From contig NC_135256.1 of the NCBI RefSeq assembly GCF_964204865.1, positions 13,454,001 to 13,518,000 of the forward strand: 64,000 nt of DNA. The letters are read 5' to 3'. The DNA comes from Styela clava (lineage: Eukaryota). The notes under the pieces are model-generated. The model worked only from the letters and a program-made list of their open reading frames with translations, was not told the DNA's origin and ran no database searches. Of this stretch, positions 3,741-40,306 are shown piece by piece. Within the stretch, counting starts at the first letter, position 1. Each line of letters starts with the position of its first letter. The position numbers and the translations under genes were made by a program.

Positions 3741-3950
3741 TGTATGCATTTTTAGAAAAATATGCTCAAAGCAAGGTGCACTCACTCAGCTTTATAAACA
3801 TTGTGATTTCTATGATCTAATATGGTTGTACTATATTCAACATTCAATTGATAATAAGTTTGTGGTTATTTGTTGCAGACTGTATTTGAGAGAATGCATT
3901 AGTTATGCATATATAATATATATAATTTGTGCAATCAATTAAATTAAGGT

Positions 3951-9004: not shown

Positions 9005-10231
9005 TCAATATTTTTCTTCTATTACCTGTCCCAATCGTCTTAATAAAGGCACAACTTCTGTGATGCTATCCACTGTTTTGTCAGCACCCAAATCACAATC
9101 TCCACCTGGACAGATGCCTATTGTGAGACCAACTTTTGAGTTCCGTCCCAGTTTCATGTCAATTGGCGTGTTTCCGACGACCACAACATTACTAGGTCTA
9201 ACGCCAGTGTCCGCACATATGGAATCAACATTCGAAGCATGTGGCTTTGGCAGAAGGGAAGGATCTTTTGCACATTTTGTAATGTCTATCATTTCTTCTA
9301 TTCCAAGATATGATATAGTTCTTTTGGTATCGTCTCTGGTACTGGAAGAGCATATTGCAATTTTGATTCCGAGGTTCTTCAAGTCTTTGAATGTACCAAT
9401 TACATCACCTTCAAATAGATATATTTTATTCAAAGATATAAGAACATTTGAACTGGACATAAGCGAACCAAAATAGTCTAGTCACGCTTACTACATGACA
9501 TTGCTTTGCTCAAAAATTCTTAATTAAATCAGACTAACCAATTGTCGCTGAAGATCTCTTATTCTGCTCATCTATCAGCGATTCGTGTGGTAGTAATTCA
9601 GCAGTGTCGAAAACGGCTAGTTTGTATGATGCACTGGTTTGCTGAATTGACTTCGTTACATATCTTTCTGAAAACCTTGGTCAAAAAGAAAATGTTTTTA
9701 TCAATCGAAGGTCGGAGACATAGGTGATACTTGTCGTTATCGGCGAGAAAAATAGCTTATATGATTCATATTTGGGCTAAAATTTCAGTGCAAATTTTCA
9801 GGGATTATACCGGTAAAAAACAACTTTCCATACAATAAACAACTTTCCAAAGTGCACGAGATACGGGTTATGCACTATTTGATAACGAAGAAAATCATTC
9901 GTAATTTGATCTGAGAGCAATAAAGCTAAAAAAATTTGTATTAGGATGTTTACGCAATTGCAAGTTAACCCTAAAACCGATTTGTGATTAGCCTATCACA
10001 GAATGCAATGACAATTTAGACTTTTGAGAGAAATTAAGCATAAAATTTTTTGTTTCGGGGCGGAAATATCGAAATGCTATCTAGAATTCGGCGTAGTTTT
10101 ACTAATTTTGTTTAGTTATTTATATACCGCAAAATCTTTATTTTTAGAATGAGTATTTACCTTATAATGAGCGTTTTCGGTTTTCCGAGAAATTTTGAAA
10201 ACGATCCGGAAATCATCTTGGACGGGCCCAT
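9005..10231 (-). CDS. HAD-superfamily hydrolase-like protein (HAD-C), cap-less with degenerate catalytic motifs; exons about 10231-10161, 9663-9539, 9408-9005
   Basis: The last exon GDVIGTFKDLKNLGIKIAICSSS..LPKPHASNV..VVGNTPID.KLGRNSKVGLTIGI..VDSITEVVPLL aligns with HAD-A and HAD-B. The middle exon gives YKLAVFDTAELL at the motif I position. The first exon (MGPSKMISGSFSKFLGKPKTLII) needs an AAG acceptor 4 nt downstream of a CAG, so it is less certain. Confidence 0.75.
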
Positions 10232-11838
10232 CACAGACTAACTCCAGGCAGCTATGTGCGTTGTAATAGTTTATTCAGGACGGTAAATGCCAATACCATT
10301 GAATATTACACACAAAATACTGGAAAACGGTCATTGGTGATTAAAAACGAAAATTTAGGGGATGAAGACAATAAATTTATTTTGTCATGCGAGAAGTCAC
10401 AAATAAGTAATTCATACATAAATTATCATACATTGGATAGGATACCAGATATCATCGCTATTAACAGGTAGTTGCGAGGGACCGCAACTGGTCATCAAGA
10501 GTCTGCGACATCGCCATTTATTTATCCAATATATATATATCAACAATGCTACGGAATCATGAAATATAGAAATACCGATAATTTCAGCTAAGACATCGAC
10601 ATTGTTTGAGAGTATTATTCGATTTATTAAAATACTTTAATGACATGATTAATAATCGTAGTTAAACGATAGTCAATCAATTAAAATTTAGAAAAATGTT
10701 TTAAAAATCTTTGCAGAACAATATATATACATACTATCATAATCTTTTATTAATAAAATGAAAAGAAAACAGCGTCATTTTGGATGAACTATCAGGTTAC
10801 ATAAGATTCATATGAAATTTAGAAATAAATAAAATTAATAACCTTTTAGCAACAACAACAACAATCTTTAACCACTGAAATGTTCAGTGTTAAAGAGAAA
10901 CGCGATTTTTTTCACAACAACAACATTACGAATACTAACAACAAAATATCAACAAACGATCCATACATAATTCCAATTCGTGTCCAAAAATGTGCATACT
11001 AAAAAGTCTATGCAAGTCTGATTGCTTGCTCGCATGGTGGGAGAATTGACGCCAAGAATGCAGTTCGATTTTTTTCGCGCTTCTATATATCTTTCACTCC
11101 AAACAAAGCTCTGTAAGCAGCAACTGCTTTGTAAGATTTGGAAACTACTTTATTTTGAAAAGAGTTTATTTTCAATTTTATTTTTTCCAACCAGTAAAAA
11201 ATATCACAATCATAAATTACGACAAAAATATAATTTACAGAGTTTATCTGATTCGGCGTCGCTAACCCGTTATATTGAGGGTGGGTGGGTTCAATTTTCA
11301 CGCCTATGACGTTATCCAAATCCCCCTTTTCTAGCATCATCTCACATGCGCCTTCCCTATAAGTAGCTGACCGCCTGACAATTCAAGAAATTTAATTCGG
11401 ATCTTAAAAGTAACGTTTGAAAGACCAATACAAATTGACATTACATGCTCATATTGTCGCCAACATCGGACATGTCTCATGCTCATTCGTTTTCTCTGAA
11501 TTTGATTAGTTCGAAGAAATCATTTCTGACAAGACGCGTTAGTCATTGGTTATTAATTTGAGCCCGCAATACTCGATAACTTGACCTATATATATGCTAC
11601 ATTTGCCTACATAGGAAAGCAATAACAATCATAATATACTGACTGATAACTGATGCAAAATCAAATACGACATACAAAATTGTGGTCGCCCCACACTACA
11701 AAATGAATGCGATCTCGTCTATTGTATCATTTTGAAATAAAGTTCAGATCATTTATTGTCTCGCGGATAGTTTCAACTTTATCAGTGCTGCTGCGAATTT
11801 GTCAAGCAGCTTTGCTTTCGCAACTTTTGTTTACACAG

Positions 11839-15643: not shown

Positions 15644-18600
15644 CTAGCGTTGCTCTGACAAAGATTTTGGTTGATAAACGGGAGTGTTTGGCATATGAAG
15701 GGGTTCACGGTTACGAAGTCTATCTGCAATCTTTTCAGCAATCATAATCGTAGGACCATTGAGGTTGCCACTTACGACACTTGGCATTATAGAGGCATCT
15801 ATTACTCGTAGATTCTCAAGACCATAGACCTGCAAAAGATTTTAAATAAAGATTATGAAAGCTCAAAGCCTTGAGTTTGATGGCTGAAAACTTTTGGAAG
15901 AGTAAGTATCAAACGATCAGAAGAACAAGGTCCATTACAAAAACATGCTTTCGAATGAAAAGTTGATGAACATATCAATTTCATGTTCTTGATTTATTGT
16001 CAGTTAGAGGTTCTACAGTAAAGTTAAAAATGCTGGTATTATTCTGGACATTTATTTTCTCACCTGGCCTTCATTGTTGACGACTGCCATTTTATCAGAC
16101 TCCGCTCCCATTTTACAAGTACATGAGGGATGGTAGGATGAATCACAATATTTCCGAACAAATGCATCGATTTCTGAATCTGACTGTACCTGAAGGAAAA
16201 AGCATTCGATGTTTAATGACATAGGTTTATACAAGATGGGACTTTCATATTATTCTGCGAAGGTGAAAATTGACAATATACCTTAAGCATAATATGGGAA
16301 CTACGACCTCTCAATCTCGACCAATGCAACATACTGGGTATGAGGATAGATGAGTTATTTGTTTCATATGTGTGGATTGATGGTGGTTGAAGCCCACAAC
16401 TGGCCAGTGGTAACGTGGATCAACCTACGACAATCAAAAGTCCAACCATCCTTTCACACATAATTATCCCCGAAAGGGATTCAAACCTACAAACTCACAA
16501 AGGTAAATTAGGGTTTCCACAATAAAGTTAGGTGACTTTTACGGTTTTACTATATTTTTATTTACTTCAAATCTATATACCAAATAGCTACATTTGTAAA
16601 TGTACTACTGCACAAACGAGACTGTTGATTTTATATAGAAACTATGTTCAAAAAACTTTATGAACTTGTCTTCCTGTTTTAGTTTGAGAAGATACACCGT
16701 ACTCAATAATTCACAAAAAAATCATACCTCTGCACCAGGTCTTAATTCTTCTCCTTTCAATTCATCAAATGCCTTTTGTTGAAATATTTCTCTGGTTAGT
16801 TTCACACAATTTCTCATGTCAACAATGTCTTCCTCTGAACGGGTAAGGTTGGGTTTTATTAGGCAAATAACAAAAGTAACCTACCATAATTTGTCCAAAT
16901 ATTTTTTTTAATAAACTTAGATTTATGTTAGTTGGGGATCTGTCTTTAATGTAATTTAGCGTAATATACATATTATGTGAACAAATTTGACTAGCCTGAC
17001 TGATGCTAAAACAGCAGGTGATTATCGATCACTATTTGTGTACCATAGTGAACTCAGAATTCGACAAGCAAAGTCTCAATTTTTATTTGTTTTATGCATT
17101 TATTCGAAAAAGTTTTTCTCAAAAGACGATTGTGTGTCTAAAGCAGGGGTTCTCAACCTGGGGTTCGCGAACCCTCAGGGGTTCACGAGAAGATTTCCAG
17201 GGGTACTTGGATGACAGTCGAGTTTTTGTATGTTGCTGTTTTTTAATATCCTTTATTACTATCATGGGGAAATGCGTGCCCATTGGAACTAGACACCAAT
17301 TGATACGTAGATTTTCCTTGATCTTGCATTGTTGTATTTGTGACGCAACAATGTGAATTTCAAGTCTTTGCGAACAAACTGTGAAATCTCTAAAGACAGC
17401 GTGCTGCGAGCATTGGAGAAGTGATTATGCTTATTGAAAATTGGGAGAAATTTTAGGAATTCATTAGTTAGGCAGACGACAATTGCAATAATATCAACAA
17501 GACGATTTAATTTAGTTACATATGGTCAATAAATTCGTGTTGCAACAAATTGTTAGTCAATGTATCAGTATATCACAACTTTGTTTGGTGTCTTATTACC
17601 GGAGTACGGAAAAAAGGTTGAAAACCCCTGGTCTAAAGTATGGCTCAGGAAGTGCTTTCTGCTGTTTGGTGAATGGTAGCTGGTGGAAGTCTTTCTTTGT
17701 GGTCAAACAGAAGTGACCCCAGGACCCACAATTTGAGAAACTCTGCGCTAGAGATTACTGTGACAGTGAAATGTGAGAATTTTTACTACTGGAATATTTC
17801 ACAGTTTCCAATACAACTTCACTAGCTTCAAATATATTAGAAGAAAGTTTTGATCTTTGTAATACAAAAGAGATACAATAGTTTTACTCACCGGTACTGA
17901 GGTAATTTGGTTCAATAATTGGATGATCTTTAGGATTCTTTGACTTCAATTTCAACCAACCACGACTTGATTCTCTCATAGTACCGGCATGTGCTTGGAA
18001 TGCATGGAATTCTGGATCAACTCTACCATGGTCAATAACCTGAATAAAGTAAAGTGTTGCATAATGAGGTTTTGAACAAGTCATTTTCTGTTAATCAGAA
18101 TAGAGCAGGATTAAAATTTATCTTGAGAAAGAACAGTTGATGGAACAATTGTTTAACATTGATCAAGCAAGCTTATATTGCCCTGGAATATATATTGAAA
18201 CTCTATTTCCTTTCTGTAATCAGCCACCCTAATAATTTAGTACAGCATACAGTATCATAGCATAAAAACTTGGCAGCCTCTATTTTGCTTAGGTTGATTG
18301 ATTTATATTAGTAATTTAATTTTGCAGCCATAAAAGTACTACATGCTGTTCAGTATTTGAGCATAGCACTGGGTCACAATATTTTACAGAATTTATTTTG
18401 TAAATATTTTGTTTATTTAAAAGATTTGGGTCGCTTGAAAAAAATTTTGTCAAAATGCATTTTAACCTAAACAACACAGACGAAATGCCAATATTACAGC
18501 AAGAGACAGCCACAGTGAATCAGGTTTATTATCTCTCTCTAGAACATATTCCCATATACAGAAGGTCGAACACACCTGAGAGGGCAAGAAATGATATTGA

Positions 18601-21600
18601 ATATCAGGATGTGAAACTCCTGGTTTACTTCTTATAAATCCTCCAGCATGAAGATGTGTCGTTGCTCCCATCCCTGTCTGTTTTAACAACCACTCAGCAC
18701 CAATAGGAATCATATTTATAAGTTGTTGAGCACTGTACAGCGTGATTGGCTGAAGCAAACAAAACATATTTTATATTGAAAATGATTATAATACAAGCAA
18801 CCTACAATACATTTCAAGTTTCAATAAATTTACTTTAAATAATTTTTATAAGTATGTGAAACATGCATCGTGTTTTAATCAATATCAATCGAGCTGTGTA
18901 ATGCAAGAATCAAGAGTCTTGTTGAAGTTTAAATAATTATTCTTGTCTGAAGAATGCTGACCTCGGTCAGAGGAAACATTGAGAAATAAATTTATGATAG
19001 TGTGCAGCAAGACCCTTGAATCACATAGAATAGTCATCTTCATTCCTGATTCAGTGTCATTGCATTATAGACATACAGACTCATCAAAAAGTATAGTAAT
19101 AGTATAGAGTAGTCTCGTGTAATTCCAACCGATAGTTATATTTACAAGCATTTCAAAAAATTGCAATTTGTAAACATCAATTTCAAATAAAAATTTAGTC
19201 CCAAAAGTGAAACCATTTCACATCAACATTAACCATTAAATGTTATAACACTAATATATCAATATCTCTGACAGGACTACCAAAAAATATTTGGGAAAAA
19301 TTTAACAATAAGATTGAGATAACTGACAAAATAACATACAGAATGTAACTCGGAAATAATAAAAAAAACTGTGGAAAAAGTCTGAGACAGAATTTTAATT
19401 AACAATGTAGAACCTTTGTTTTGGAAATGATGCACAGCACCCTATCTAAAACAAAATACAATATCTGCATGTTACGTTTATCATTAACCAACCTTTTTAC
19501 ATTTGTATTGAACGTAAACTTCTATATGATCTTGTAAATTTTCACCGACACCCGGTAAATTCTCAACAACAGGAATGTCTAATTTATTCAGATCATCAGC
19601 GTTACCTGTAGATAATTAAGAAAACGATCAAATCGAGAGAACATAAAGATTTAATTCGAGTATGATACAAGATAAGTTTTTTTTTACATGTAATTGTATA
19701 ATAGGTCATGAAGTAACACGGCCTCAAGTTGGGTATGGGAATAGCGAATAAGATAAATTTAGTCTCAAATGCATAAACTCGGATGCTGGAGAAAGTTGTG
19801 ACCAAGCTAGCACTAGAGATGAGATCTGAAGCCCAAGCCCGACCCGACAATTCGGATCGGGTCGGGCCTAAAATGCCAATCATTACGTTCGGGTCGGGCT
19901 TTTCTATCGATGACTTTTTTTTTAAATAAATATATTTTTATAAAAAATAAATACTAAAACTATGTGTGGATACTAAACTAAGGAATACTTGGTATAAAAG
20001 AAATAATTTGAATAAATCAGAGAAGAAGATGTAATGAACCTTTCCCCGACCTCTGACCTCTGAGAATATTCTTCCTATACTCCTAGACTCCTAAATAAAA
20101 TATGAAATCTCGGGTTTGCTTCGGGCTCAGACCTGCAAATCCAGTTAATTAGTCGGGCTCGGGCCATCTTCAGCACACTGAAATTAACCCTTGATGCTTT
20201 GAAACTTATTTTTAGGTTCCTATTGAAAGTTTCCATTTGTTTTGTCACAATTGAAATTCTGCAATTCCGACTCGAAATTTCTACCCCCTACATCACAGCA
20301 CTGCCCCAGTAGGTATGTTGAACCATCATGGTGGTGACGAGTACAGACATTATAATCACCAATGCTTCTCCCAGAAACGTTCTTGTACATTGCAATACAA
20401 CTAAAATACCAACTCACCAATTCCAGACAACATTAATAACTGTGGAGAATTGATTGATCCACCAGATAAAATAACCTCATTTGAAGCTCTGAATTCTTTC
20501 CTTTGACCATTAATCATGCATTCTATTCCAACTGCCTTTTTACCATCAAATATGATTTTAGTTGTAAAACATTGTACCTGTAAGACAGTAGAAAAAATTT
20601 CATAATCATCACGATTTTGCTCAATCGAGTATTTTTGATCAAATAGATCAGGGGTCGGCAACCTTTTGTCGCTCGCGGGCCAAAATTAAGGTTGCAAGTC
20701 ATTGGCGGGCCGCACATATTTTTAGAAAGTTGAAAACCGAACGGATGATACTTTTTATATTAAAAATCAAGCAGTGATACATCTCTCGAATAGAATATCG
20801 ATTTGTTTCCTCATTGCATCTCATAAAATTTTATTTGAATATTTTCAGCGCCATTGAACCCTTTGCACTTAGTATCAACTTTTCTGCGTTTTGTTGTCAT
20901 TTGCCTAATTATATTTAAATTATATGCTCATTAAACGAGTAATTGCGAATTATATAATTGTTAGGTTATAATATAATTTAGTCTAAAGAATATATTCGTC
21001 AAAACAGATGTTTTGTTAGTGTAATTTAGTGAAGCGTCGCGAACCGGATTATAGTGCTCCACGGGCCGGATCAGGCCCGCGGGCCGTAGGTTGCCGACCC
21101 CTGAAATAGATGATCGATTCATTGATTTGTCAACCAATAAGAAAAACAAATGAAAGCATACATAATAAACAAATACTGTTTTTTGGTAAAGACTGGAAGG
21201 AGCGACAGAACCATGCGGTCATCCAAGTCAGCTCCCTCCAATTTATTCGATTGACATAGTAATTTAGCTTTTGAAGAGATAAAAAGAGATAGAATTTTTC
21301 ATATTTATAAGAAGAATAAAGTCAATAAGATAGTCCCATTTGAACAAAAAAAAGCTTATCCATGTTTAGGCTCCAAACAAGTCTCGGTACAAGAGGCCAC
21401 TGATATCTAATTATAGAAGGAGCTAGAATTTCTGAAAAGAACAGAATCTCTCTAGTTCGGCACTGCCACTGCATACCCAATTTATAACACCCTGGTTGAG
21501 TTGGTAGACATGGTATTTGAACCTTATATATGGTGACCCAAACAAAACCGGAACCCAGTTCCATTTGGAACATATTGCATCGGTTTCGTTTTTTTGGGAT

Positions 21601-26269: not shown

Positions 26270-26665
26270 TAGGGCTGGTCATTTTCGAATACCTGATGAT
26301 TTCAGAATCGAATCGAATATTTTTTTTCGAATCGAATCTCGAATATTTCGGAGATATATAATTGTATGTACCTTTCTTCTTGTATTTGGTCCTCCAGACA
26401 CATAAATTACTAGAAACGTAAAATACATCGCTCTGACAGATTGCTGAGCGATCACACACAATAAAAAATACGTTTTCATCAATAACTCACTACAGAAAAG
26501 AGTCATATGTCAGAATTGCGTTGAAAAAATATGACTTCCATAAAAAAATTGAGAAATATACCTCGACAATTGGCGGAAAGGAAATAAACAAGATGGTGGC
26601 GATTCGAAATTTCGCTCTGAACCGATTCGAATAATTTACTATTCGATTCGAAATGCCCAGCCCTA
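26270..26665. mobile_element. MITE with TAGGGCTG termini and TCGAA(T) subterminal repeats
   Basis: TIRs TAGGGCTGGTCATTTTCGAAT / ATTCGAAATGCCCAGCCCTA; TSD ATTGTGAA at 26262-26269 and 26666-26673. Confidence 0.88.
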
Positions 26666-28167
26666 ATTGTGAATCAAATTTTCTCAACCTTCATCGGTTC
26701 ATAATCCCTCAAAAAGATATACAGTGACTCAATTACCTTCTCTGAACATTGGATTATGAATATACACTCCAGATTATAAATTAAATATTGAAAAGAAAAG
26801 AAAATTTTATTCGCAAAATTTCTTCATATTTTTGTTAGTTGTGTCAACACTAGGTTGAGAAACTTTAGTTCAATATTACAATTTACAATTTTCGAAATTT
26901 TGAACAAAAACGGTATTTCAGCGCTAATTTTCAAATGTTTTACTGATAATACCAACTATCTACTCCTATATAAGAATTACTATCCAAAATCAGAATATAA
27001 TCGAAGAACGCCTCCAATATGAAGACATTAAACATTGTCAAATGGAATATTTATATTCACATTGAACAGTAGAAAAATATAGGATGTGACATTAAAAAAG
27101 CTCTATCATAAACAACACTGAATTGCTGCTGCAATGTCATGCTTAATAACAAGTGCAATATCAGACAATCTAGAGATGCTATTTTAAAATACATTCCAAA
27201 ATAATATTTTTGAATATTAAATATTGAAGATATTCTAAAATGTATCATGTTCAAGAGATAATTTGCACAAAACATTATGAATTCAAAAAAAAAAACGGGA
27301 TTTGGTAATGCAAGATGTTTCATATAAACACTGTTTCGGGTAACAATTTTTTGCAGTAAATCTAAGTCTATTTTCGTCTAATCACCACATTACCAAACAC
27401 CTATTAGAGTAACAAATTTCAGAAATGAAGATATTCCAAATTATTTCTGAAATCAAGAATTAACTATTATCGAAACACCCATTTTTGAAAGTATTCCATT
27501 ATGTGATTCATTATGGACATTCAAGCTTAAAACCTACTTAATTCGGTTCTTTTCAACAAATTTAGCTGCAATATACAAGAGAATACAAAAATAAACTTTA
27601 AACGAGATTGAAGGTATGATTTTCGACTATGGCTCCACAGGAAAAGGAATAATGATGAAACTTAACACTATATGAAAAAATTGCTGACCCAGATCATCCA
27701 GGTATTCATTTAACATAATGATTAAAGACATGCTTCATACCATTGACTATTTCATCTGTTATCATATTTTTGATTAGAAAAACATACGATATTTAGAACA
27801 ATACAATAACCGTACTGTAAGGTGGGTACCAAACTGAAGATGGTTACCACAACATTACCATATCCATCTTCACTCAAATAAATTTATGGAACAAACATAT
27901 CAATATTAAATGGAAATAAATTTTGGGTGATACAATGAACAATTGTTAATTATCCAGACCAAAAAATTATCATTTTAATTACAATTAAAGCTAATCCAAT
28001 ACAATGTGAATAGGTGCATAAATCTATGTAGTCAATTCTATTTAAGTGCAAAGTGTTTTTAAAGCATGCATTATATAGTACATTGTACTAAAAATTAAAT
28101 TGTGACAGATAATTGTCATATGCTGTGCTATAGATGGACCACACCTGTATCAGATGACTGATACTCG

Positions 28168-28170
<3 letters not shown>

Positions 28171-28198
<28 letters not shown>
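28171..28198. repeat. (AT)n microsatellite
   Basis: About 14 AT units seen directly. Confidence 0.9.
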
Positions 28199-29122
28199 CA
28201 TGTTTTTGTAATATAAATTGTATAATGTACATTGTACATAAATATAAAAGTAATATACTTTATTGGACAAGACGTAAGTCTATGTACCATATTGCTTAAT
28301 TGTTATTGTGAAAGAAACTACTTCTTCTTAACTATTTGATCAATTGATTCCAAATTTCCAGTACTTCGAGATGGAAAAAATCAACACATACTTTTACGTT
28401 TATTCATTTTTCAAATTTCCCTAGAGTCCTACGAGCCCGAAATTTTCACCCTAAATTTTGATGGTTTATAAAATGCACGAACACAATTTTATATGACAAT
28501 GCAATTCTTATAAAAAAGTGACTGAAATTTTGTTGACAATAGTATTGTTCTGTTGTCTTAAAACAGTTTGTTACAAACCATAAGACAGACCATTTATAAC
28601 AATTTTGAAGGGTATTAGTATGAAAATATACTTCTTTTTCAAGTCGTTTCTTAAAAAAAAAAGAATTCGAATTGCTGAAACCATGCATTCTGTCTTGACA
28701 ATTCGCTTCATATAAGGATAAAATATAAATGTATGAAGTATGTAGTATGAATGTACAATTTGAATTCAATAAACAACACTTCCTTTATCCAATTTGAAAA
28801 ATTGTAACAAAGCAGCATATTCAATAAATTGAACAGTAATAGAAAACTACAAGGTTACCCATAAAAACAGAACATATATAAATTTCTCAATTACTTCTAT
28901 AAATATATAGAAAATATATTTCACACTATTCTTCAGTTTGTGTATCATTGTACAGAGAAGTTTTAGTCATCGTGAATGCTTTGCACAAAAGTTATGTTCC
29001 CTCTAGAATATGTTACAAATAACCTGGGTTCTGTTTTTTTGGGTGTCAGTCACCCTGTATTAAATTAAAAATCCAAAATTAATTTTATAAAGTATACTGA
29101 TATATTTTCTACAATTCAACAA

Positions 29123-32100
29123 TCAGTCTTGTTGTGGTGATGTACTTCCACTCATTGTACTGTTTTCTGATGAGCTGAAAAATAAAATATTACAGTTTAA
29201 TAGTAATTATTAGGATCCCAGAAGTATTGAAAAGATTAAACATGATAAATTTTGAGCTGTTATCACTACATTTACAACATTTTTCAATAGTTTTTTCTTG
29301 CGTCAATTGCATCAAATTTGGTTTAGAATGTGATAATACAACATGTGAAGCGAAAATTTCAAAATACGGATAGTTTATAGTTTTTCCAAATTAAACACAA
29401 GCGTAACACACATTTTACTTTTATTTTATTTGAATCCTATAAAACTCAAACTGTGTGTTGCAAGAGTATATTTTCTGCTCTGACAGTAATCGAAAAAAAA
29501 ATGATGAGAACGACCTTTTTAAATCAACAACGCAATACAGGTGTTGATTAGCAACAGCAAAAGCTTATTTCAAAATTACTCTCAAAACAGGCACATTCAT
29601 CACAATGAGAATGAGAAGAATAAATGATTTGAGGAACGTTGTTGTGTGTTCTGCGTTTTTATATTTATATTTATATCAAAGAAGATCAAAGTTGGAATGC
29701 TCAATAACACCTCACCATGATACATGAACATTTAAATCCAAAGTAGACGATTAGACAAATTATATTTTTATTATTTTACCTTGTTTTGTACATTCTTGTT
29801 GAATGCTCAGCATGTCTCGGAGAATTACCTTGTTGAATGAGGAAAGATAGTTATGTTAATTCCGCAAAAGTGTGGAGAATAAATTAATAACAGGACTGAT
29901 ATAACTGTTGATGAATCTTCTGTGGCTACAATAGTTATTAAGATTTAACCAGAGAATAATAAATCCTAATGCTACATGTAAAATAATTTACAACAATCTA
30001 AATATCAAAGATAGGATTTAGATTTTATTATTATATTTCAAGTGAATTTGCATGTTTGTCATGCTGACCCACACAGAGAAAATATAGTCTCTTCCAATAA
30101 GCAAAGTTACGAGATAGTACCGAAATTCCAACAGCAACTTAAATTTAGTGCATGACAGAATAGGTCTAATAAAGTTGAAATTCAGATAAATGGGACTTGA
30201 CATTTCTTACTATATAACAAAACTTCCCAGTAAGGTCTTGATTTTTCTCAAATTCTTCCAAAACCTAATTTCAGAATGCTGTACTATTCAGTTAAGGACA
30301 TTTCCCAGCAATAAAACCTTACCTGCATTACGAAGACTGTTCGAGTCAGAGCCATTAAGAAGTATAGGCAAAGCTTCATCAATTGAATTAACAACATAAT
30401 GTGCATCCTTAAGATCAGATTTTTCCACTTGTCCAGATAAAACACCAATTACTGTTCCACAATTACTATCTCTTCCCATGACTGTGTCAAAATGAGTATC
30501 ACCTATACCAAAAATCGAACTCAGAATATGCCAGAATACATTAGATTTAATTTGAATAGGAATTAGTTAATAGAGGTGATACAAATATTGATTATGACAA
30601 GGTGGTCCAAGGCTGCGAGGTTGAAGGGCCACAAAAACGTTTGAGGAGGTCTCGGGGGGCTGCAGTCGGAGAAAACCCAAAAGAGATCAAAACTTCGTGA
30701 GTTTACTCACTTTAAATATATTTAAGAATGAGAGTTTATCGTTCTAAAATCAGTTTTTTAAGGAAACTATATGAATGACCTTATAAATTTAATTACCATA
30801 GATATTGAACTTCGGGTGTCGTTGCTCGATATCCAGTTTTGGTTCATTGTGGGTTCCCTTACCAGTAAAAATGTGTGTTGAATTTGTTTTATTTTTTTTC
30901 AATTTCAAACTTCACAATGACAATGTAGGCAATATGACAACAGCTAAACCATTCTCTTCAACCAATAGCCATCATGCCAAAACCTACCTATCATAACAGT
31001 ATCCTCAACTTTAACATCAAGATCTTCACAAATCATACGAATATTATCGGGTGCAGGTTTTGGAGTGTTATCAGCATCATCACCACAAACCAATCTATCA
31101 ATCACGTCAGCAACGCCAAGAGCTTCCAAACTGAGTTCAGCACCAATTCTTGAATCAGCTGTACACACAGCTATTTTGATATCGTTTTCCCTGTGAAAGA
31201 ATTACATGAAAATGGAATCAATTGTAAATCTTTACATATTGTAATAATTAACAACTCTGTTAGTGAAATACTGGCAACTTGTCTTGAACTTGTGTTCAGA
31301 ATAAATTTGTTTGATTCGAGGGATTTATACCTATATTGGTTCTCTATCTTCTTTGTCAGGGGTGGCCAATATGTCGATCGTGTTCATATCGCCATATCTG
31401 GAGTGCTCAAGCGTATCTGATTTTGAATGAAAATAACAACATGCTCAAAAATTGTCTTCAACAAGTATTTGTACTGTGCGACAGTAGCTGTGACACCAGA
31501 TTGTCCTTTTCAATATTAATTTTTTATTGATTCTAAACAAGCCAAGATTTGGTAGTATTCATTCATTTTTGTAAGTGACTTTACTATCGATCAGTCAATC
31601 GCAAGTTTATGAAGATTTTAGTCGAGCTTGGTTGAAGATGGGTTAGCCACCTCTGTTTTGTATCAACAAAATTTAAAATATTTAGTTCGAATAATATTCG
31701 GTACTCAAGCAATTAGTGATATTGAATAATTCCAATACAGGAACAAAATTATCCTCTACATCGGGGCTCTTCTAACCGATGGTACCGACCCCCAGTGGGT
31801 CCCGAAGGGGCAGGAAATTCTTTTTCGACACTAACTTATGTTTAAAACCAAATATCAATCAAATTTGGAACAAGCACTGAGACCCACTATCACCAAAATA
31901 GAGCCAAGACTTTATCTTTTGTGCTGGAATATGCAAGCACATCGGTTTTATTGAAGGTAGTATCAATTTTATTATTCTTTTTTTTAATATTCTCTGTATT
32001 TCCCGTTTTTATTTATTTTTATTATTGTTTTATTATTTCAGTTTGTAGAGGGTCGCGAAAAAATTTGCCCGTGCCAAGTGGGTCACGATGAAAAAAGATT

Positions 32101-34063
32101 GAAGAACAATGCTCCAGAGGAATTTACTAATAAATAATAACCATGTGAATATGAACAAAATTAACCCAAATAAGTTTTCTAATACAAATTGGCACAAAGC
32201 TAAGAGATAATAAGTCGCAATCATCTGAATCCTGTGGCCAAAAGATGGTACTTCATTAATCAATCTTTTCTGTTCCGTTTTTTTGGTGGTTTCTTGCTCT
32301 TGGTATTTCATATCATCACCCCTATCTAATAAAAGTAAAACAAATTGAACTTTTCCATTTACTTCAAAGTCCTGAATACTGATTGAACATCTCCCAACGG
32401 TTTGACAGTGAGAGTATGACATTTGTCAGTGGAATCAAATGAATCAACCCAGGCATGAGAAATGAGTGATTTTGCTTCATCTATATCTATTCCATGTTGT
32501 CCAGCCTGTAAACAGTTATTCAAATATTAGTTGTTAATCCATGAACGTGACTTGATAACCTATTTGAATATATAGTAGTGTTTGATAAATTCTTATCCAC
32601 CGAAGTCCTTCAATCATGGTTAGGTTTGAATTTTGCTTGGATGAAAAATTCCATCGAAGAAAATGTTTCAACTTTTCGATTTACCTTCCTAAGGGAGGAA
32701 TTTTCTCATCATTGCAAAAACAAACATATTCAGTAAAAATTGAGTTTTCTATTTTACTGGTTTGAATTATCAAAAAGTTGTCAGAATAACGATTAAAAGA
32801 TAATGACGAGATAGCAATCAGAGACCGCCGACTTATCGATCTAGTGGGGTGTATCGTTTGCTCTGACTCAATAGCGACACAGGTGTCCCATCACTAATTA
32901 ATTAATAACCCGCTAATTATACGACATAGTTCATCCAAAATCAATAGACTTCTGGTCCTAGATATGATGAATGCACATACAAAATTTGGAGCAGATTCAA
33001 CCTCGCTTTGGTGAGATATTGCGTGTATCTTATTGACAGACAAACAGACAAATACCTATCAACATACTTACCGATCAAGTTCGATAAGTAATAAAATATC
33101 ACAATTTACTGATAAAAAGTCTACAGTCGGCATACTCACTAAAACGTCGACCAATCCTTCTTTCAATTCTCCATGTGTATCATGAGCCAATATACTTCGA
33201 CCAAATCTTTGTGTCGTCTTATCATAGTTAAAATATTCAAAAAGATCTTCTGAGAGTTTCTTCCCAGAGGCGTTTTCTAATCTGTGAATACGCAATCGTG
33301 TCGTTTGTCCAAAACAAAATAATTTCAACCCTTATTTTTATATTTTAACGAACCTTGATGCTGTAGCCTCACACCACGGGGCCCACATTGAGTTAAAACA
33401 TGTGAGAGTCCCATCTTTATCAAATATAACAAGCTTACATTGAGACTTTTTTAATGAAGTTGACGAATAACGAACGATTGCTGATGGGGAAAACTGTTTA
33501 CTGAAAAAATATAAAAAACAATTACAGAGGTCAATTTATTTGTATTCTATTGGTGCGTTGTTCCCCAATAGCGGAGGAATTTGATTAGAACAATTGTTGT
33601 TTTGGGGAAAGAAATAGATAAATATTGCTTTGCATTTAGTGTAGTTTTACTAAAATCCTTCAGCTACTCAGCATTATTGTAATACATATTAGTACACACA
33701 TTATAGACAATTTGAATCATGCAAAAGTCGGAGTTCGATTTGTGCATAGCACGAGCTTTAGATTATTTAAAAATTGATTAAAATATGGAATTATTCACAG
33801 TACAGAAGAAATAAAGAGACCCAAAATAGGCAACGAAAGTAATCATACATCGAAAAAGGTTGTGAACCACTGAATTTGTGGTTGTGCGTGACAACTGACA
33901 AGGAAACCAAGCATAAAAACGGTTGTAAACCACTACGCTAGAAAGCCTTTATTCAAATAATAATGTCCTTATTTACAATTTTATAAAACAACTAGAATAC
34001 TCACTTAACATTTGCAATCAACTTCTGTGATTGGGGAAGCAATTTTCGTAATGAAGTATTCAT
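29123..34063 (-). CDS. HAD-superfamily (subfamily IA, PGPase-like) phosphatase HAD-B; exons about 34063-34005, 33500-33354, 33281-33140, 32505-32363, 31190-30988, 30502-30323, then an uncertain 3' end (29925-29829 and/or 29174 onward)
   Basis: [41 protein letters not shown] (motif I)..KIAVCTADS (II)..NTPKPAPD (III)..IGDTHFD (IV). All introns are GT-AG and in phase. The stop depends on splicing: 29152 or 29123, or 30288 if the last donor is read through. Confidence 0.88.
32807..33092 (+). mobile_element. DINE-1/Helentron-like non-autonomous element; second copy at about 34563-34850
   Basis: Two close copies with subterminal inverted repeat GACTTATCGATC, (CAGA/CAAA) microsatellite and 3' hairpin ACTTATCGATC-AA-GATCGATAAGT. 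Confidence 0.7.
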
Positions 34064-34377: not shown

Positions 34378-34924
34378 CAGTGGTTCCCAAAGTTGATTGA
34401 CCGGGGTTGATTGCCCAAATTAGAAGCAGAAGGATATTCGCGGCCCAGGAGAAGGGTGTATAATTGTGATACCGGTGTAAATGATTTGATATGAATATAC
34501 ACATGCTAAAACTGTGATGACGTAACAATTGGTGGTATCAAGAACTCAAAAAGAAAAAAAACACGAGATAGCGATCAGAGACCGCCGACTTATCAATCTA
34601 GTGGCGTGTATCCTTCGATTTGACTCAATAGCGACACCACGTGTCCCATCATTAATTGATTAATAACTCGCTAATAATACAACATAATTCATCCAAAATC
34701 AATAGGCTTCTGGTCCAAGATATGATGAATGCACATGCAAAATTTGGAGCAGATTCAACCTCGCCTTCTTGAGATATCGCGTGTATCTAACAGACAGACA
34801 AACAGACAAATACCTATCAACATACTTATCGATCAAGATCGATAAGTAATAGTGTTAAAATATTTCACCTAGGTTCGATGGACCATATTAAATCGTTATG
34901 CATGCCTTGGTTTGGGAACCACTG
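34378..34924. mobile_element. hAT-type MITE containing the DINE-like element, itself nested in an older MITE (about 34273-35121)
   Basis: TIRs CAGTGGTTCCCAAA / TTTGGGAACCACTG; TSD (T/A)TTTAAAG. Confidence 0.8.
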
Positions 34925-36614
34925 ATTTAAAGTGAATCAAATATGATGACTGTGATACATTAGGTAATTCTTTTTCTTTCGCTTACTGGATATTATTATT
35001 TAATGTGATGGAAACACCAGAGAAATGGGAAAGCAAAAGTATTTTCATGGAAGAGCAGGGAGCCACAAGTGTTGAGTCCATGGAAAATGGGCTCATCATG
35101 AAAGCTTATTAAGAACCACTGGTCTGGTAACACTTGATCATAAAAATTATCTTCCCATGAATGGATTGTTGAAATTTCAGCCAATGTGTAAAATACGAAC
35201 AGCACTTGTATTTTCAGTTATAAATTTATGACAAAAATCGTAAATTTCCGAAAATGAAGACTTCAAAAAGCTGCATGGAAGAATTATGGAAATGGTACAA
35301 AAACTACAATACAAAATTTTGTTGGCCTTTCATGTTTTAGTGCATTAAAGTTTTAATAAGTATCAAATGAAAAGTAGTAGGGTTACAATGAAATTATCTA
35401 CTAAATTAGTATCTCATTTGATAATGCTGAATATACTAATGAAAATGAGCAAGCGCACAAAGATAATACTTATTTAAAACAATGATTACCAATACTTATT
35501 TAATAAACATAATAATAATCAATGTGCTCAAATCAACATAAAAAGCTAAGTCAGTCTCTGATTAACGATATAAAACGAACAAATTGCATAATTTGTTAAG
35601 AAAAATTTTCAATGTTTGATTTCATGACATTGTGATAATACATGGAGGATATATAGAGCTAGGCTTCCCAAACTGGGGGTCGCGCAATGAATTTTAGGGG
35701 TTGCAAAGAATACATCAATTTCAAACAAAGTATCATACATATTGTACTCTTTCAGAGTTTTGATTTGAAACACAATTATTAAAACTAGTTCAGAAGATCA
35801 ATCTCACGATTTTGAGAGAATACAATTAGGATCAGAGACTTGACAAGGGTCGCGGGAAATTTTAATATATTGGAAAAGGTTTAGGCAATCAAAAACAATT
35901 TATTTTGCCAAAGTTTGAAATTTTTATTAAAAAAACTGCAAGACATGGCGTGCTAGGGACACTTCGATATATGTATAAGGAAAGGTAATAAAAAAAAAAA
36001 CGATGAAATAATATAATTGGTATGGTTATGTTATGTATTACCTCACCTTAAACATGCGTAGCAGCCAGTTATCACACTGAAAGATTATCCAGAATACCAA
36101 ACATTTATTTTTGCCAGTTACCGGTAAATCTTATCTAACACCAGTAGGTATCAAATTTATTAAACAAACAGTTGACATAGCAAATAAGTAAATACATGAA
36201 CAAAACAAAATTATCACCATTGGCTATATAAATTATCGAATATACATTGTACACGGAGCAACTAGAAATACCATTGTACCAACCAACATTTTCTATTACT
36301 TTCTGATGATATTACAATCAACCTGCAAGAAAGAAAAATTGTTAAAAAAACATTATTTTAAAAATCATTTCAACATATGGATTGACAGATTGAGGACTAC
36401 AAGTTGGACTTTAAAAATTTGTAATTATTTTTATATTTGTTTTATGAACGTTTATAAAGTTTGAATTTGTATTAGTAAACTTAATCTCCAAGATTAGATT
36501 CAAATTTCTGAGCCTGCTTTTGCATTTTTTTCAATCTTTCAGATAGTAAAATCTTATATTTATTCATTCAAAAATACTCGCATATACAACATACACATCC
36601 ATACAAGCATTGCT

Positions 36615-39600
36615 CTATTTGGCAGAGTTTTTTAGAAGAATAGGCAGAGCTTCATCAATTGAATTAACAACATAATGTGCATCATCAAGCTCAGATTCAT
36701 CAACTTGTCCTGTCAAAACCCCAATCACTGTTCCGCATTTACTATCCCTGCCCATGACGGTATCGAAATGAGTATCACCTAAAAAAGAACAATTGTTGGG
36801 GTGAGAGTCAAATTACCCCATATCCAAAACTGGTGAATTTATCACCAGTCGAGAACCCAACTAACTAGACTAACGTAGAAACGAGACAAATATAAAAAAA
36901 AATTTTTTTAAATTAGTCTTCAAATATTTATAGAATAAAGTCTGTTAGTGTGTGAAATTTTTGTATCTCAGATATGAATAATATTTTCAGATTTTCATTA
37001 GAAGATTTTACAACATGCCAGGTCACAGTAAAAAAACATAGGAAAATAACTATTACATGCAAGTACTTCTAAATGAACACAACAATATTTCTTCCAAAAA
37101 GTCCTTCCAACACCAATTACGGGTACTAATAATGTCTAAATGTCTTTTTGCAAGTTGAAACATAGCATCATTTGAAACAAAAAGATGAATTATTTCATAA
37201 AAAAGCTCAAATGTATTTTACCTATCATAACAGCATCTTCCACTTTAACATCAAGATCTTTACAAATCATATGAACATTATCGGGTGCGGGTTTTGGAGT
37301 GTTATCAGGATCATCACCACAAACCAATCTATCTACTATATCAGCAACACCAAGCGATTTCAAAGCTAATTTTGCGCTCGGTCTTGTGTCAGAAGTACAT
37401 ACAGCTACTTTAATGCCATACTCTCTGTTAAAAAAATATTCAGCTTATCCATATGGCGAACCACGGCCTCTCGTCCGGTTACCATTAAGATAATACAATA
37501 GGCTTTGTTATTCTGAACTTTCAGAACTTGGTCTTCCAAAAAAGGTTTGAGTCATCAAACTCCATTAGCTGTGAGCTCTCACAGTTAACAGTCAATGTAT
37601 CTACCAGACAAAAAAAATGTTATGCCTAATTTTTTTCGAAGAACCTCAGTTATGCAAATTCACTACACCACTGTTTTTTTTCAAACCATATTGACATAAA
37701 ATGATTTAAGTCTCCCTTTAATCTGTATTTACTAATGCACTATCTACGTGATTTTTCATAATCTCAGAAGCTCTTGGAAGTTTAGTTGTTTCCCGCAACT
37801 TTACTCACTCAGAGATCAGATTTCTATGTTTCTGAGTGAGTAGGTGTAACCTTGCATTGAGAAATTCTTGTTACAAGATTTTTAAAAAACATATCAAGCA
37901 TTTTTTTATACTGAGTTACTGACCCTTTTATATCCAAAGATAGAAACTGTATCAACTGTAAAGCAATTAAGGATATCCTAAATTTCAAATACAGGAAGTA
38001 TAAATGAATAACAAGTCGAGTGATTAATTTTTTTGACCATGAAACTTGGTAGAAACAGTTGCATCAAGTATGACCGAAACCATAAATGGCGTTTACTATT
38101 CTTAATATAATATAATCTAAATTATTAGGTTTTCTTCAACCGAAATTTTACAAAGTCATTATGAATTTATAGAGCTTATATTTAGTAAAAGAGATAATTG
38201 ATTTTATACAGTATCAAAATAAAAAAAAAGGTTGTTTTCATCAGATGTGGAATGAATATAACAATAAATTTAAATGTGAAAATATTCTAATTTCTTCCAA
38301 AAAATATTTACTTTATTTAATGTAACCAATTTCGAATATATTGGTTCAGATAGTCCTGTTTTCAAGTTCAATAAAAATACAAATACTTTACTTTAAAGTT
38401 TGAAATATTGTTCGAACATCTCCTAATGGTTTGACAGCATTGGTATGGGAATCCCCGGTAGAGAATGTATCCGTCCAAGCATAAGAAATGAATGAGTTTG
38501 CATCATCAAGATTTATTCCATGTTGTTTATTCTAAAAATAAATTGCTAGAAAATAAGGTTTAGTAATTTTGGTAGTTTTCTTTGATAATTCTTAATGATA
38601 ACATTGTGCTTAGGCCTTAGAATAGGATTTCAATGATATTGGGCACAATTTAAATTTTTTTAATTGTTAAAATTGATCGTGCACCTTATAAGATGTGTGG
38701 ATCATGTAGTGCTTTATGCTTAATTGCCTATATTCAAAATGTGCCTACCGGTATGTGCCTTATGTATGAAAACAAACACAATCTAAGCAATTTATTGACA
38801 GTGCACCTTATTTATGGGTCGTAAAATATGGTAGGCCTATATTATACTCTCTCAAATGAATTCTTTAAATAAAAACATGAAGTTAGAAACAACTCGAATA
38901 CTCACAAGAATTTCAGCTAATTGATCTTTCAATACAGCATTTGTGTCGTGTGCTAATTTACTTCGACCAAATTTTTGAGATTTCTTGTCATAGTTAACAA
39001 AATCATAAAAAACATCAGATAGTGTCTTTCCAGAAGCTTTTTCTAATCTACAAATAGACAACAAGAATAGGGATTCCAAAGGTCAGCTTTGTGTCCAATC
39101 AGTAACTTGGAGTGAATGGAATACCAAAGTACAGTATATACAAAACATAATATCTTTAGTAATAACATGAAAAAACATGGAAGCAATGCCTAATTGAAAT
39201 AACTGAAATTGAAAGAAATAAAATAAAGGCAATAAATAGCCTCCTTCAGCCTTTAATTACTGAAAGTTGAAAATTGAATTGACGACTAGAACCTTGATAA
39301 CAACAACAACAAAATATTTAGCAAAATGATTCAATTTCAATGAGGATTTAGATATTTATCCCAGGGGAGAGGAATGCCAATAAAATGTCTTAATCATATG
39401 GCGAACAGCCTCTCGTCCGGTTACCAGTCTATGTCGGGTACAAGCAGTCTATGTCGGGTATGGGATTAATTAGCCAGTTATTAGTTTTGAATCCATGGAC
39501 CTAATAACTCTTGCAGCATAAGCTGCAATCTAAAAAGATATGTAGCCAATATTTATTTGCTGATGTACAAAGAATATACCTTTCAGCAGTTTCTTCACAC

Positions 39601-40306
39601 CATGGTGCCCACATAGAATCAAAGCATGTGAGTGTTCCATCTTTGTCAAAGATAACCAGCTTGCATTGAGGCCTTTCTGATGAAGTTGAAGAGTAACATG
39701 GGTAAGCAACACGCAACAAAGATACTCTTCTGTAAAAGAATATAGCAGAATAATCTATATTTAGATGTGAATATGAACACATAAGATTTCACAAATACAT
39801 TTTTATAAATTAAGATATGGTGTGATATTTTGCAATAGAATATTTTAACTACGTTAGCAATGTCACAAACATTGAAGAAAAAAAATTAATGTGGTTGCCA
39901 AAAAGCTACAGGGGAAAAGAGAACGATTTTATTATTACAAACAAAGTCAATACACAAAACTATACATTTCAGTCAGAACATAAAATAATTCAACAGTAAT
40001 TGGTTGATGATTGTTTTGCGTAGGTCAGTAAGCAAGATTAATAAAGTCATACAGGCTCCTGACCCTGTGTGTATAAGTATAATGTCTATAAATATTCATT
40101 TGAATATATAATTTTTAATCCACACATAGATTGTATATAGCATGCACCAATTCATTTTGCACAATTTACATAATTCTGTAATTTGAATTGACATAATTAC
40201 AACATATCATTCATTGGTGGACACTGAACACTCACTTTACATTTGAAAATCGAAAAATTAATGAAGACTGAATAAGCAACTTTCTTGCAAGGTGATGATT
40301 GTTCAT
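36615..40306 (-). CDS. HAD-superfamily phosphatase HAD-A, tandem paralog of HAD-B; coding exons about 40306-40236, 39729-39580, 39047-38906, 38531-38392, 37424-37222, 36778-36615; probable non-coding first exon ending about 41616
   Basis: [91 protein letters not shown]. Intron positions and phases are identical to HAD-B. Confidence 0.92.
39340..39500 (-). mobile_element. SINE 3' fragment; further fragments at about 16340-16510, 37445-37485, 46430-46590, 47070-47400, 62410-62570 and 63810-63880
   Basis: TTTATCCCAGGGGAGAGGAA..CATATGGCGAAC..CTCTCGTCCGGTTACC, reverse match to the SINE tail. Confidence 0.75.

Follow-up and report, generated by a model that had tools for sequence, protein, structure and literature searches.

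A HAD–CHDH gene cluster in the tunicate Styela clava and its probable relation to HAD–CHDH fusion proteins of other animals

Marine invertebrates use glycine betaine as one of their main osmolytes. Choline dehydrogenase (vertebrate CHDH, bacterial BetA; TIGR01810) resembles both the CHDH of the window analysed here (the whole 64,000-nucleotide stretch of Styela clava DNA) and the C-terminal 550–600 residues of the fusion proteins described below. The described choline dehydrogenases have no HAD domain, whereas many invertebrates have a HAD domain fused ahead of CHDH and Styela has one encoded just upstream of it. In the available parts of the respective reports, CHDH is handled as a stand-alone enzyme in oyster (PMC11849188) and in sea cucumber, where it was cloned as 600 residues with GMC domains only (PMC10559093). 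Our literature search, run on articles without their supplementary files, found no paper on a HAD–CHDH fusion, and the search on Styela found nothing.

Several described HAD phosphatases invite comparison. PchP of Pseudomonas aeruginosa, likewise a HAD phosphatase, frees choline for the choline-to-betaine route; according to the accessible portion of its description, it is induced together with the choline catabolic genes, is periplasmic, has DMDNT as motif I and Ser in motif II, and was modelled on phosphoserine phosphatase (PMC3170909). PchP is not reported as fused to or lying beside betA, and it was compared with the Styela HADs by description only. MtlD of Acinetobacter baumannii, a bifunctional mannitol-1-phosphate dehydrogenase/phosphatase, is also a HAD-IA phosphatase fused to a dehydrogenase, although its dehydrogenase comes from a different family than CHDH and the protein is bacterial and cytosolic. 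Both MtlD steps serve one compatible-solute pathway, with the phosphatase acting after the dehydrogenase rather than before it. PHOSPHO1/PHOSPHO2 and plant PECP1-type enzymes are HADs that act on phosphocholine or phosphoethanolamine, belong to a different HAD subfamily and are set apart here by description; we know of no link between them and CHDH.

In the window, four co-oriented minus-strand genes occupy positions 9005–40306 in the order HAD-A > HAD-B > CHDH > HAD-C, with intergenic gaps of 2.5, 4.1 and 5.4 kb. The gene models bear out the sequence-only reading that three genes of one HAD family surround CHDH on this strand. HAD-A (36615–40306, minus strand), modelled from sequence and reading frames, has six exons (40306–40236, 39729–39580, 39047–38906, 38531–38392, 37424–37222 and 36778–36615) encoding 289 aa with intact HAD-IA motifs. 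It corresponds to RefSeq XP_077970452.1 (P0151), which was aligned exon by exon and is 100% identical in exons 1 and 3. HAD-B (29123–34063, minus strand; RefSeq XP_077970447.1, P0001) encodes 324 aa, also with intact motifs, in eight exons: 34063–34005, 33500–33354, 33281–33140, 32505–32363, 31190–30988, 30502–30323, 29828–29780 and 29174–29123. Exons 7 and 8, the former with a phase-2 donor, encode its Ser/Thr-rich tail, and the exon 6–7 and 7–8 joints were each present in three of four RNA-type runs. The two proteins share 67% identity and carry FDKDGTL (motif I), CT(S/A)D (motif II), PKP (motif III) and GDTHFD (motif IV), the set that had been reported as intact in two of the HADs. First coding exons comprise 23 codons in HAD-A, 19 in HAD-B, 17 in CHDH and 23 in HAD-C, each plus 2 bases, so that the first introns of all four genes are in phase 2; the phase-2 intron after about 17–24 codons claimed for every gene was thus recovered at 17–23 codons.

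The RefSeq names (PpaX-like, phosphoglycolate phosphatase-like) and the generic HAD-IA fold would suit ordinary housekeeping phosphatases that flank CHDH by chance. This is extremely improbable. All 12 matches to the HAD-A type in the 377-Mb Styela genome fall inside the HAD/CHDH cluster, which argues that the cluster is not a chance arrangement; the PpaX and phosphoglycolate phosphatase equivalog cut-offs are missed widely, and fusion or adjacency of the two families recurs across animals, a protist and bacteria.

The CHDH gene (15644–25107, minus strand) has 12 coding exons. Exon 1 (25107–25007) contains the ATG at 25059 and contributes 17 codons plus 2 bases, and its joint to exon 2 (24467/25007) was seen in all four RNA-type runs. 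Exon 2 (24467–24364) ends in IIVGAG, the junction with exon 3 reading IIVGAG|SAGC. Exons 3–7 lie at approximately 23921–23751, 23153–22893, 22435–22235, 20580–20416 and 19606–19493, and exons 8–12 at approximately 18764–18573, 18039–17893, 16859–16725, 16192–16061 and 15832–15644. An upstream non-coding exon, starting at or above 25945, is joined to exon 1 (25107/25945) in two of the four runs. An open reading frame at 24240–24070 was rejected as the CHDH start, as it sits in intron 2 and overlaps a repeat. Among approximately 20 GMC loci, this gene is the best CHDH match in the Styela genome; its exons match Pfam GMC_oxred_N/C and show 47–76% identity, exon by exon, to the CHDH part of the fusion P0074. 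The betA equivalog TIGR01810 (cut-off 732.1 bits) is passed by the CHDH parts of P0074 (762.6) and of a second fusion, P0351 (768.8), the window CHDH itself being compared exon by exon.

Transcription across the cluster bears on whether co-orientation simply marks a tunicate polycistronic or read-through unit, with the genes linked by expression only. RNA contigs cover 26000–29174 nearly throughout, while depth is near 0 in the introns at 29200–29780 and 25200–25599; the DNA that separates the stop codon of HAD-B from the 5′ exon of CHDH (25945–29122, minus strand) is therefore transcribed, either as a long HAD-B 3′UTR or as read-through, perhaps continuously across the high-copy repeat that it includes at approximately 26200–26800. 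An older RefSeq model (P0152) also merged HAD-A with HAD-B. Tunicate operons, as known from Ciona, have very short intercistronic distances and no first exon for each downstream gene, whereas the Styela genes are 2.5–5.4 kb apart and all begin with a first coding exon of their own, CHDH having separate 5′ exons as well; an operon was rejected on these grounds. Expression linkage would also leave the protein fusions of other phyla and the bacterial pairing unexplained, and we regard it as very improbable. HAD-B and CHDH lie on separate transcripts in the Styela RNA contigs, and no joint from HAD-B to CHDH exon 2 occurs among the 15 joints listed (25 others fall beyond these). Given the separate transcripts, the Styela cluster is best read as an old HAD–CHDH unit in split form.

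Such a unit is found as single proteins elsewhere. All 20 matches to the HAD part of P0074 have both HAD and GMC Pfam domains, and a GMC domain is present in 43 of 44 long relatives retrieved with HAD1 of P0171, the HAD being fused upstream of CHDH. Fusions occur in molluscs, nemerteans, an annelid, amphioxus, a crinoid and a protist, with named examples in Branchiostoma (880 aa), Anneissia (870 aa), Tubulanus, Lineus, Owenia and 'Rmarinus'. One full fusion of 1195 aa (P0314) is encoded on a contig of 3844 nt, and others of 804–839 aa on contigs of 2.8–3.8 kb; contigs this short are taken as intronless mRNA. The shared layout starts with a presequence-like N-terminus, followed by one or two HAD domains and a disordered linker that is basic and rich in Ser/Thr, with CHDH last. 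HAD-A shares 38% identity with the fused Branchiostoma HAD (E = 2e-61), and the Styela HADs are likely orthologous to the fused HADs. Against the pairing stand the unfused HADs of nematodes, cnidarians and Clavelina, and the sea cucumber CHDH with its GMC domains only; for the Clavelina, Ciona, amphioxus and echinoderm genomes, HAD–CHDH linkage was read from fused products only. There is no vertebrate among the named matches to the Styela or fusion HADs, in keeping with the earlier remark that no vertebrate orthologue of the FDKDGTL type was known.

The pairing extends to bacteria. In one gammaproteobacterial order, betA directly adjoins the HAD gene, as a divergent neighbour, in 26 of 30 loci whose HADs are 43 to 100% identical. 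Among the best 80 bacterial loci, betA lies next to the HAD in 3, and the two genes adjoin each other in one Anaerolineae genome. The betA genes of two loci (L026 and L041) pass TIGR01810, and HAD-A is 29–31% identical to betA-linked bacterial HADs. Linkage or fusion of HAD orthologues to CHDH/betA had been set beforehand as a test, and the outcome was fusion in many animal phyla and betA pairing in bacteria. The same two families thus appear fused or adjacent in independent lineages, as the Rosetta-stone and conserved-neighbourhood argument looks for, and we consider the HAD–CHDH link very probably real. The proposal that the HADs and CHDH form one functional module finds strong support in the fusions and the betA pairing; the arrangement itself is better taken as a split fusion gene than as a cluster formed anew. 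In Styela the genes are separate and in the same order as in the fusion, each with a short first exon and a phase-2 intron. We favour, at slightly better than even chances, an old two-enzyme unit of a HAD-IA phosphatase from an uncharacterised clade and CHDH, split and partly duplicated in Styela. HAD-A and HAD-B are placed as products of a styelid-specific duplication in a tree of 51 domain rows from 42 chosen proteins, from which domain matches not spanning profile positions 65–260 were dropped, HAD-C excepted. Both HAD trees are quick SH-aLRT trees, and the HAD backbone is unresolved.

Turning to what the phosphatase part might do, motifs and structural modelling place HAD-A and HAD-B in subfamily IA of the HAD superfamily (C1 cap), with a predicted helical cap and Rossmann-like core. 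The AF2 model of HAD-A (pLDDT 87.8) sets helices at 60–169 between strands 48–51 and 173–177, and its top Foldseek matches in PDB are C1-cap HAD-IA phosphatases, including the MtlD phosphatase domain (7ocu, 7ocs). The window exons match Pfam HAD_2. Nothing more specific emerged: exon-wise Pfam and NCBIfam scans returned generic HAD matches only, the best E in a sequence search of PDB with exon 5 was 0.14, Foldseek against PDB gave the generic HAD-IA fold and no substrate-specific match, and the ESM Atlas returned generic HAD clusters, the nearest (score 0.93) being a 322-aa cluster commonest in nematodes. PhnX-like (TIGR03351) and PpaX/phosphoglycolate phosphatase profiles gave the best partial matches and account for the RefSeq names, but the Styela HADs score far under their cut-offs and keep motif I DxDGT and the motif III Lys. 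P0151 reached 65.1 of 218 bits for PpaX, and 52.9 of 225 and 46.5 of 180 for PGP, and P0001 scored similarly against the PpaX and PGP models, so both identities were rejected. Members of the TIGR03351 phosphonatase group have DxAGT as motif I and an Arg where motif III would otherwise have its Lys. Identity as such a phosphonatase-like hydrolase was likewise rejected, with a best score of 66.5 against a cut-off of 218.9 bits, DKDGT as motif I and an invariant K212; in the alignment of 56 sequences F51, D52, K53, G55 and T56 do not vary either, and conservation of D54 is at least 90%. No NCBIfam equivalog was reached by the Styela HADs, and no family model above its cut-off names a substrate.

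HAD-A and HAD-B would release choline by hydrolysis of a phosphate ester that bears it, phosphocholine being the likeliest, and CHDH would then oxidise the released choline to betaine aldehyde, towards glycine betaine. As the substrate itself, phosphocholine falls somewhat short of an even chance; to our knowledge it is not an established matrix metabolite. An ABC importer lies beside the bacterial HAD in many of the best 80 loci (binding protein in 31, permease in 36), and its nearest named families are 2-aminoethylphosphonate transporters (phnS2 of L026 scores 516 bits, the cut-off being 393). An aminoalkyl-phosph(on)ate ligand would agree with this, and such phosphonate-type neighbours suit a phosphonate-related substrate just as well. 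HADs coupled to CHDH might thus act on phosphoethanolamine, a glycerophosphocholine breakdown product, a 2-aminoethylphosphonate-family phosphonate or a flavin phosphate that the flavoenzyme needs; the transporter-like neighbours, the PhnX-like best partial matches and the fact that no model names a substrate speak for this. The DxDGT motif and the retained Lys depart from the phosphonatase pattern, however, and the partner enzyme passes the choline dehydrogenase equivalog, making another substrate rather unlikely. If the HAD does free choline, a bifunctional enzyme system of another kind would carry out the first committed betaine step in molluscs, nemerteans, annelids, amphioxus, crinoids and tunicates. 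A function could then be assigned to a widespread, uncharacterised HAD clade that is at present wrongly named PpaX or phosphoglycolate phosphatase, and a role to the bacterial betA-linked HADs; and Styela would offer a clean chordate example of gene fission with order, orientation and intron phase kept. The pairing points to an undescribed two-step route to betaine.

Where the two enzymes would meet is suggested by their N-termini. The first 40 residues of HAD-A, HAD-B and HAD-C contain 6–7 K/R and 0–1 D/E, and in CHDH the 17 codons of exon 1 and the opening 22 of exon 2 each encode 4 K/R and no D/E, in agreement with the basic, acid-poor N-termini first described. This composition, with motifs of the R-x-[FY]-S-T type, would suit a mitochondrial location of the Styela HADs, and HAD-A and HAD-B would then enter mitochondria. 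In the fusions, the linker preceding CHDH is predicted to be disordered and contains [RK]x0-2[FY]S[ST] in 17 of 20 cases, with 45 occurrences in 1500 aa compared with 3 in 18077 aa elsewhere. The HAD-B tail resembled the linker of P0074 (1 of 500 shuffles reached the score), as did the tail of the styelid relative P0192 (0 of 500), while comparison of the HAD-B tail with the linkers of six other fusions was not significant (11 to 359 of 500); resemblance to a mollusc linker, significant for P0074 only, is suggestive only. Taken together, these data allow a broader, tentative and on balance unlikely account in which a phosphocholine phosphatase–CHDH unit is conserved from bacteria to animals, cleaved from a precursor, split in tunicates and lost in vertebrates. 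Most marine invertebrate phyla would make CHDH as a HAD–CHDH or HAD–HAD–CHDH precursor whose disordered linker would contain R-x-[FY]-S-T motifs of the presequence type as one or two internal cleavage sites; given these motifs, the precursor may be cut into separate enzymes after mitochondrial import. Tunicates would have split the gene at the linker, the HAD-B tail being its first half and the presequence part of CHDH its second, and the phosphatase would have been lost in vertebrates. Mitochondrial betaine synthesis in these animals would then start from phosphocholine rather than from free choline.

The HAD part might instead be mainly non-catalytic, serving CHDH as a regulatory, substrate-binding or assembly module. 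Consistent with this, one of the two HAD domains is degenerate at the second Asp (DLHGT or DLNGT in molluscs, DKNGT in Owenia), and Styela HAD-C is degenerate. Nevertheless, all four motifs are present in at least one HAD domain of each full-length fusion whose sequence was examined, HAD-A and HAD-B are intact, and the nucleophile Asp, the Lys and motif IV show no variation across the family alignment, which makes a non-catalytic role quite improbable. HAD-C (9005–10231, minus strand; exons 10231–10161, 9675–9539 and 9408–9005; 203 aa; XP_039249975.2, P0095) retains PKP as motif III; its other motifs read FDTAELL (I), CSSS (II) and GNTPID (IV), motif I departing from DxDx(T/V). It forms a long branch without resolved placement in the trees. 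Judged by its sequence, HAD-C is a degenerate, capless copy and would be a catalytically dead remnant, two catalytic residues having been lost along with the cap domain.

A HAD domain and choline dehydrogenase (CHDH) are recurrently found in physical association, in three settings: as fusion proteins, as neighbouring genes in an animal and as neighbouring genes in bacteria. In the Styela clava window, HAD-A, HAD-B, CHDH and HAD-C follow one another in this order across 9005-40306, all on the minus strand and with successive intergenic gaps of ~2.5, 4.1 and 5.4 kb, bearing out the co-oriented cluster of the sequence-only reading. Exon-by-exon mapping onto the window identified the three HAD genes as XP_077970452.1 (HAD-A, P0151; 289 aa, RefSeq name 'putative pyrophosphatase PpaX'), XP_077970447.1 (HAD-B, P0001; 324 aa, 'phosphoglycolate phosphatase-like') and XP_039249975.2 (HAD-C, P0095; 203 aa, 'uncharacterized'). 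These names are best-hit labels only, because all NCBIfam equivalog cut-offs were missed, the best scores being 66.5 versus 218.9 bits for PhnX-like and 65.1 versus 218 bits for PpaX. An older RefSeq model (P0152, XP_039251063.1, 601 aa) joins HAD-A and HAD-B via a small extra exon at 36300-36330; the current models are separate.

HAD-A and HAD-B are 67% identical, have a six-exon core in common and carry FDKDGTL, CT(S/A)D, PKP and GDTHFD, whereas HAD-C keeps CSSS and PKP, shows FDTAELL and GNTPID instead of intact motifs, and is missing the entire cap region; the sequence-only reading had likewise seen intact motifs in two of the three HADs. The AF2 model of HAD-A (pLDDT 87.8) found its best Foldseek matches among generic HAD-IA phosphatases, and sequence and model together assign HAD-A and HAD-B to HAD subfamily IA, whose helical cap is of the C1 type. 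First exons comprise 23 (HAD-A), 19 (HAD-B), 17 (CHDH) and 23 (HAD-C) codons plus two bases, so that all four first introns are in phase 2, and the encoded N-termini are basic and poor in acidic residues, as had been claimed. A search of the 377-Mb genome with HAD-A (E ≤ 0.001) returned 12 matches, all within the cluster. GMC oxidoreductases, the family of CHDH, occupy ~20 other loci, in tandem arrays on contigs C1, C2, C13, C16 and C18 (42 exon matches); none resembles CHDH as closely as the window copy, whose exons, searched one by one, are 49–74% identical to the fusion protein P0074 versus 35–51% for the others.

Relatives of the HADs were collected by an exhaustive HMMER search with HAD exon 5 (263 representatives, E ≤ 0.001) and a word search with HAD-A (129 matches, E ≤ 1e-5). 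Named matches of the latter came from tunicates, a sea anemone, nematodes, cryptophytes, Chloroflexota and Phyllobacteriaceae; no vertebrate was among them, in agreement with the earlier view, which knew no vertebrate orthologue of this FDKDGTL..W type. The family signature across 56 sequences reads F-D-K-D-G-T-L...W, T-x-D-x-R, C-G-D-D, P-K-P-x-P and G-D-x-x-x-D. Sea anemone members (P0197, P0026) have ~130 additional N-terminal residues ahead of the HAD domain.

Linkage or fusion with CHDH elsewhere had been proposed as a check, and fusion was found in nearly all long relatives. In P0074 (812 aa), a match in the exon 5 search, the HAD domain continues directly into CHDH; its HAD part matched 20 long proteins, all 20 with HAD and GMC Pfam domains, and the first HAD of the Mercenaria protein (P0171) gave 44 matches, 43 of them with a GMC domain. 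Named carriers include bivalves, gastropods and cephalopods, the nemerteans Tubulanus and Lineus, the annelid Owenia, Branchiostoma belcheri (880 aa), the crinoid Anneissia japonica (870 aa) and a protist, 'Rmarinus' of EukProt (886 aa). Both P0074 and P0351 have a CHDH part that exceeds the betA equivalog cut-off. Merged gene models do not account for all of these fusions: a 3844-nt contig carries one of 1195 aa, and contigs of 2.8–3.8 kb carry several of 804–839 aa, with no space left for introns. That the HADs sit beside CHDH by chance is a minor alternative, against which these fusions count. Counter-examples to fusion are the stand-alone HADs of nematodes, cnidarians and Clavelina, and a sea cucumber CHDH described, in the available text of the cloning paper, as 600 residues with GMC domains alone (PMC10559093).

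Fusions share one layout: a basic N-terminus, a single HAD in deuterostomes and in the protist but two in lophotrochozoans, a 44–71-residue linker and then CHDH. The linker is basic, Ser/Thr-rich and has few acidic residues; in the amphioxus fusion it is predicted to be disordered (pLDDT < 50 at residues 300-327, and likewise at 1-58). Within the 75 residues preceding the CHDH GxGxxG, [RK]x0-2[FY]S[ST] occurred in 17 of 20 fusions and at least twice in 14, or, counting overlapping matches, 45 times in 1500 residues versus 3 in the remaining 18077 residues of the same proteins. Motifs of this type resemble matrix processing sites. Comparable ones in Styela are RYSST near the HAD-B N-terminus and NFFSTS in CHDH exon 2. 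Exons 7-8 of HAD-B encode a tail similar to the linker's first half, a similarity that reached significance for a single fusion, and BLAST alignments of HAD-B with the fusions of amphioxus, the crinoid and Owenia extend into the linker.

Transcription in Styela was read from four RNA-type contig sets from three studies, mapped to 24400-30399; their run label 'RNA?' is a guess, and GT..AG joints show spliced RNA. The CHDH exon 1-exon 2 joint was seen in all four runs, an upstream 5' exon joint (25107/25945) in two, and the HAD-B exon 6-7 and exon 7-8 joints in three each. A splice from HAD-B exon 7 (donor phase 2) to CHDH exon 2 (same acceptor phase) would stay in frame; no HAD-B to CHDH exon 2 joint appeared among the 15 joints listed, of 40. 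In these contig data, the two messages are separate. Contigs cover 26000-29174 almost throughout and leave adjacent introns empty, so transcription also takes in the stretch from HAD-B to CHDH, at least on either side of the repeat at 26200-26800. This high-copy repeat has a summed contig depth of ~1000–7500 versus 10–60 in its flanks, with numerous internal joints and loose ends. A cluster serving as an expression-only unit is a minor alternative; the transcribed stretch speaks for it, and each gene's own first coding exon against it.

Among the best 80 bacterial loci, mostly Chloroflexota, a betA-type gene directly adjoins the HAD in three: divergently in two Acidiferrobacteraceae MAGs, and upstream in the same orientation, 24 bases away, in an Anaerolineae MAG. 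The betA-type genes of L041 and the gammaproteobacterial L026 pass TIGR01810. Within the order to which L026 belongs, 69 of 243 genomes carry the HAD (E ≤ 1e-20), and 26 of the 30 best loci (HAD identity 43–100%) have a betA-like gene, 48–51% identical to animal CHDH, inside the 1.5-kb flank. Just downstream of the betA-linked HAD, two Acidiferrobacteraceae loci hold a small dual-specificity-phosphatase-like ORF (L026, 10753-11274; L031, 10790-11275; both minus strand).

In the reading favoured here, the HAD would release choline from a phosphate ester, with phosphocholine the likeliest, in the same compartment as CHDH. The main rival accepts the coupling and assigns a different substrate: phosphoethanolamine, a phosphonate or flavin phosphate. 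In Chloroflexota the HAD gene frequently closes an operon for an ABC importer, which comprises a binding protein, two permeases and an ATPase, with a binding protein in 31 and a permease in 36 of the 80 loci. The importer's nearest named families are 2-aminoethylphosphonate transporters, a likeness that the binding protein shows weakly (69 bits) and the ATPase at close to the cut-off (433 versus 458); L026 phnS2 exceeds its family cut-off. In L012, L025 and other Chloroflexota loci, the ATPase stop overlaps the HAD start. A non-catalytic HAD role is a minor alternative: the phosphatase-type catalytic motifs are intact in HAD-A and HAD-B, as they are in both domains of the Tubulanus fusion. A recurrent pairing of an intact HAD with a copy without the second motif-I Asp was also observed, as DLHGT/DLNGT in mollusc domain 2 (P0171, P0177, P0180), DKNGT in Owenia domain 1 (P0334) and in domain 2 of the HAD-HAD proteins P0013/P0023/P0034, and DTAEL in HAD-C (9005-10231).

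Public databases list the fused proteins with automatic labels, among them 'choline dehydrogenase' and 'uncharacterized', and our literature search turned up no account of HAD and CHDH being fused or clustered; available text of oyster (PMC11849188) and sea cucumber (PMC10559093) papers handles CHDH as a GMC-only enzyme.

In quick trees, with the backbone open and HAD-C a long branch, HAD-A and HAD-B group separately, each with its own sequence of another styelid, indicating a styelid-specific duplication distinct from the lophotrochozoan HAD1/HAD2 pair. Animal HADs and 'Rmarinus' group apart from bacterial and cryptophyte sequences (support 91). Read most parsimoniously, a HAD-CHDH unit would be older than bilaterians and would have been split into separate genes in the tunicate line, retaining order, strand and a phase-2 junction, after which the HAD duplicated and one copy, HAD-C, decayed.

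A ~40–60-base element, probably a small dispersed repeat, recurs by eye in introns of HAD-A and CHDH (about 39470-39395, 37480-37440 and 24090-24040); a protein-start-like ORF at 24240-24070 was rejected as the CHDH start, as it lies within CHDH intron 2 and overlaps one copy. A ~270-base segment, probably a transposable-element fragment, was likewise seen by eye in two copies, upstream of HAD-B (about 34830-34560) and in HAD-B intron 3 (33075-32800). Unrelated neighbours in the window are a complex I 20-kDa subunit gene (56630-58301, plus strand; Oxidored_q6, 89.5 bits) and a single-exon, 493-aa, ALG1-like group 1 glycosyltransferase ORF (60713-62191, minus strand).
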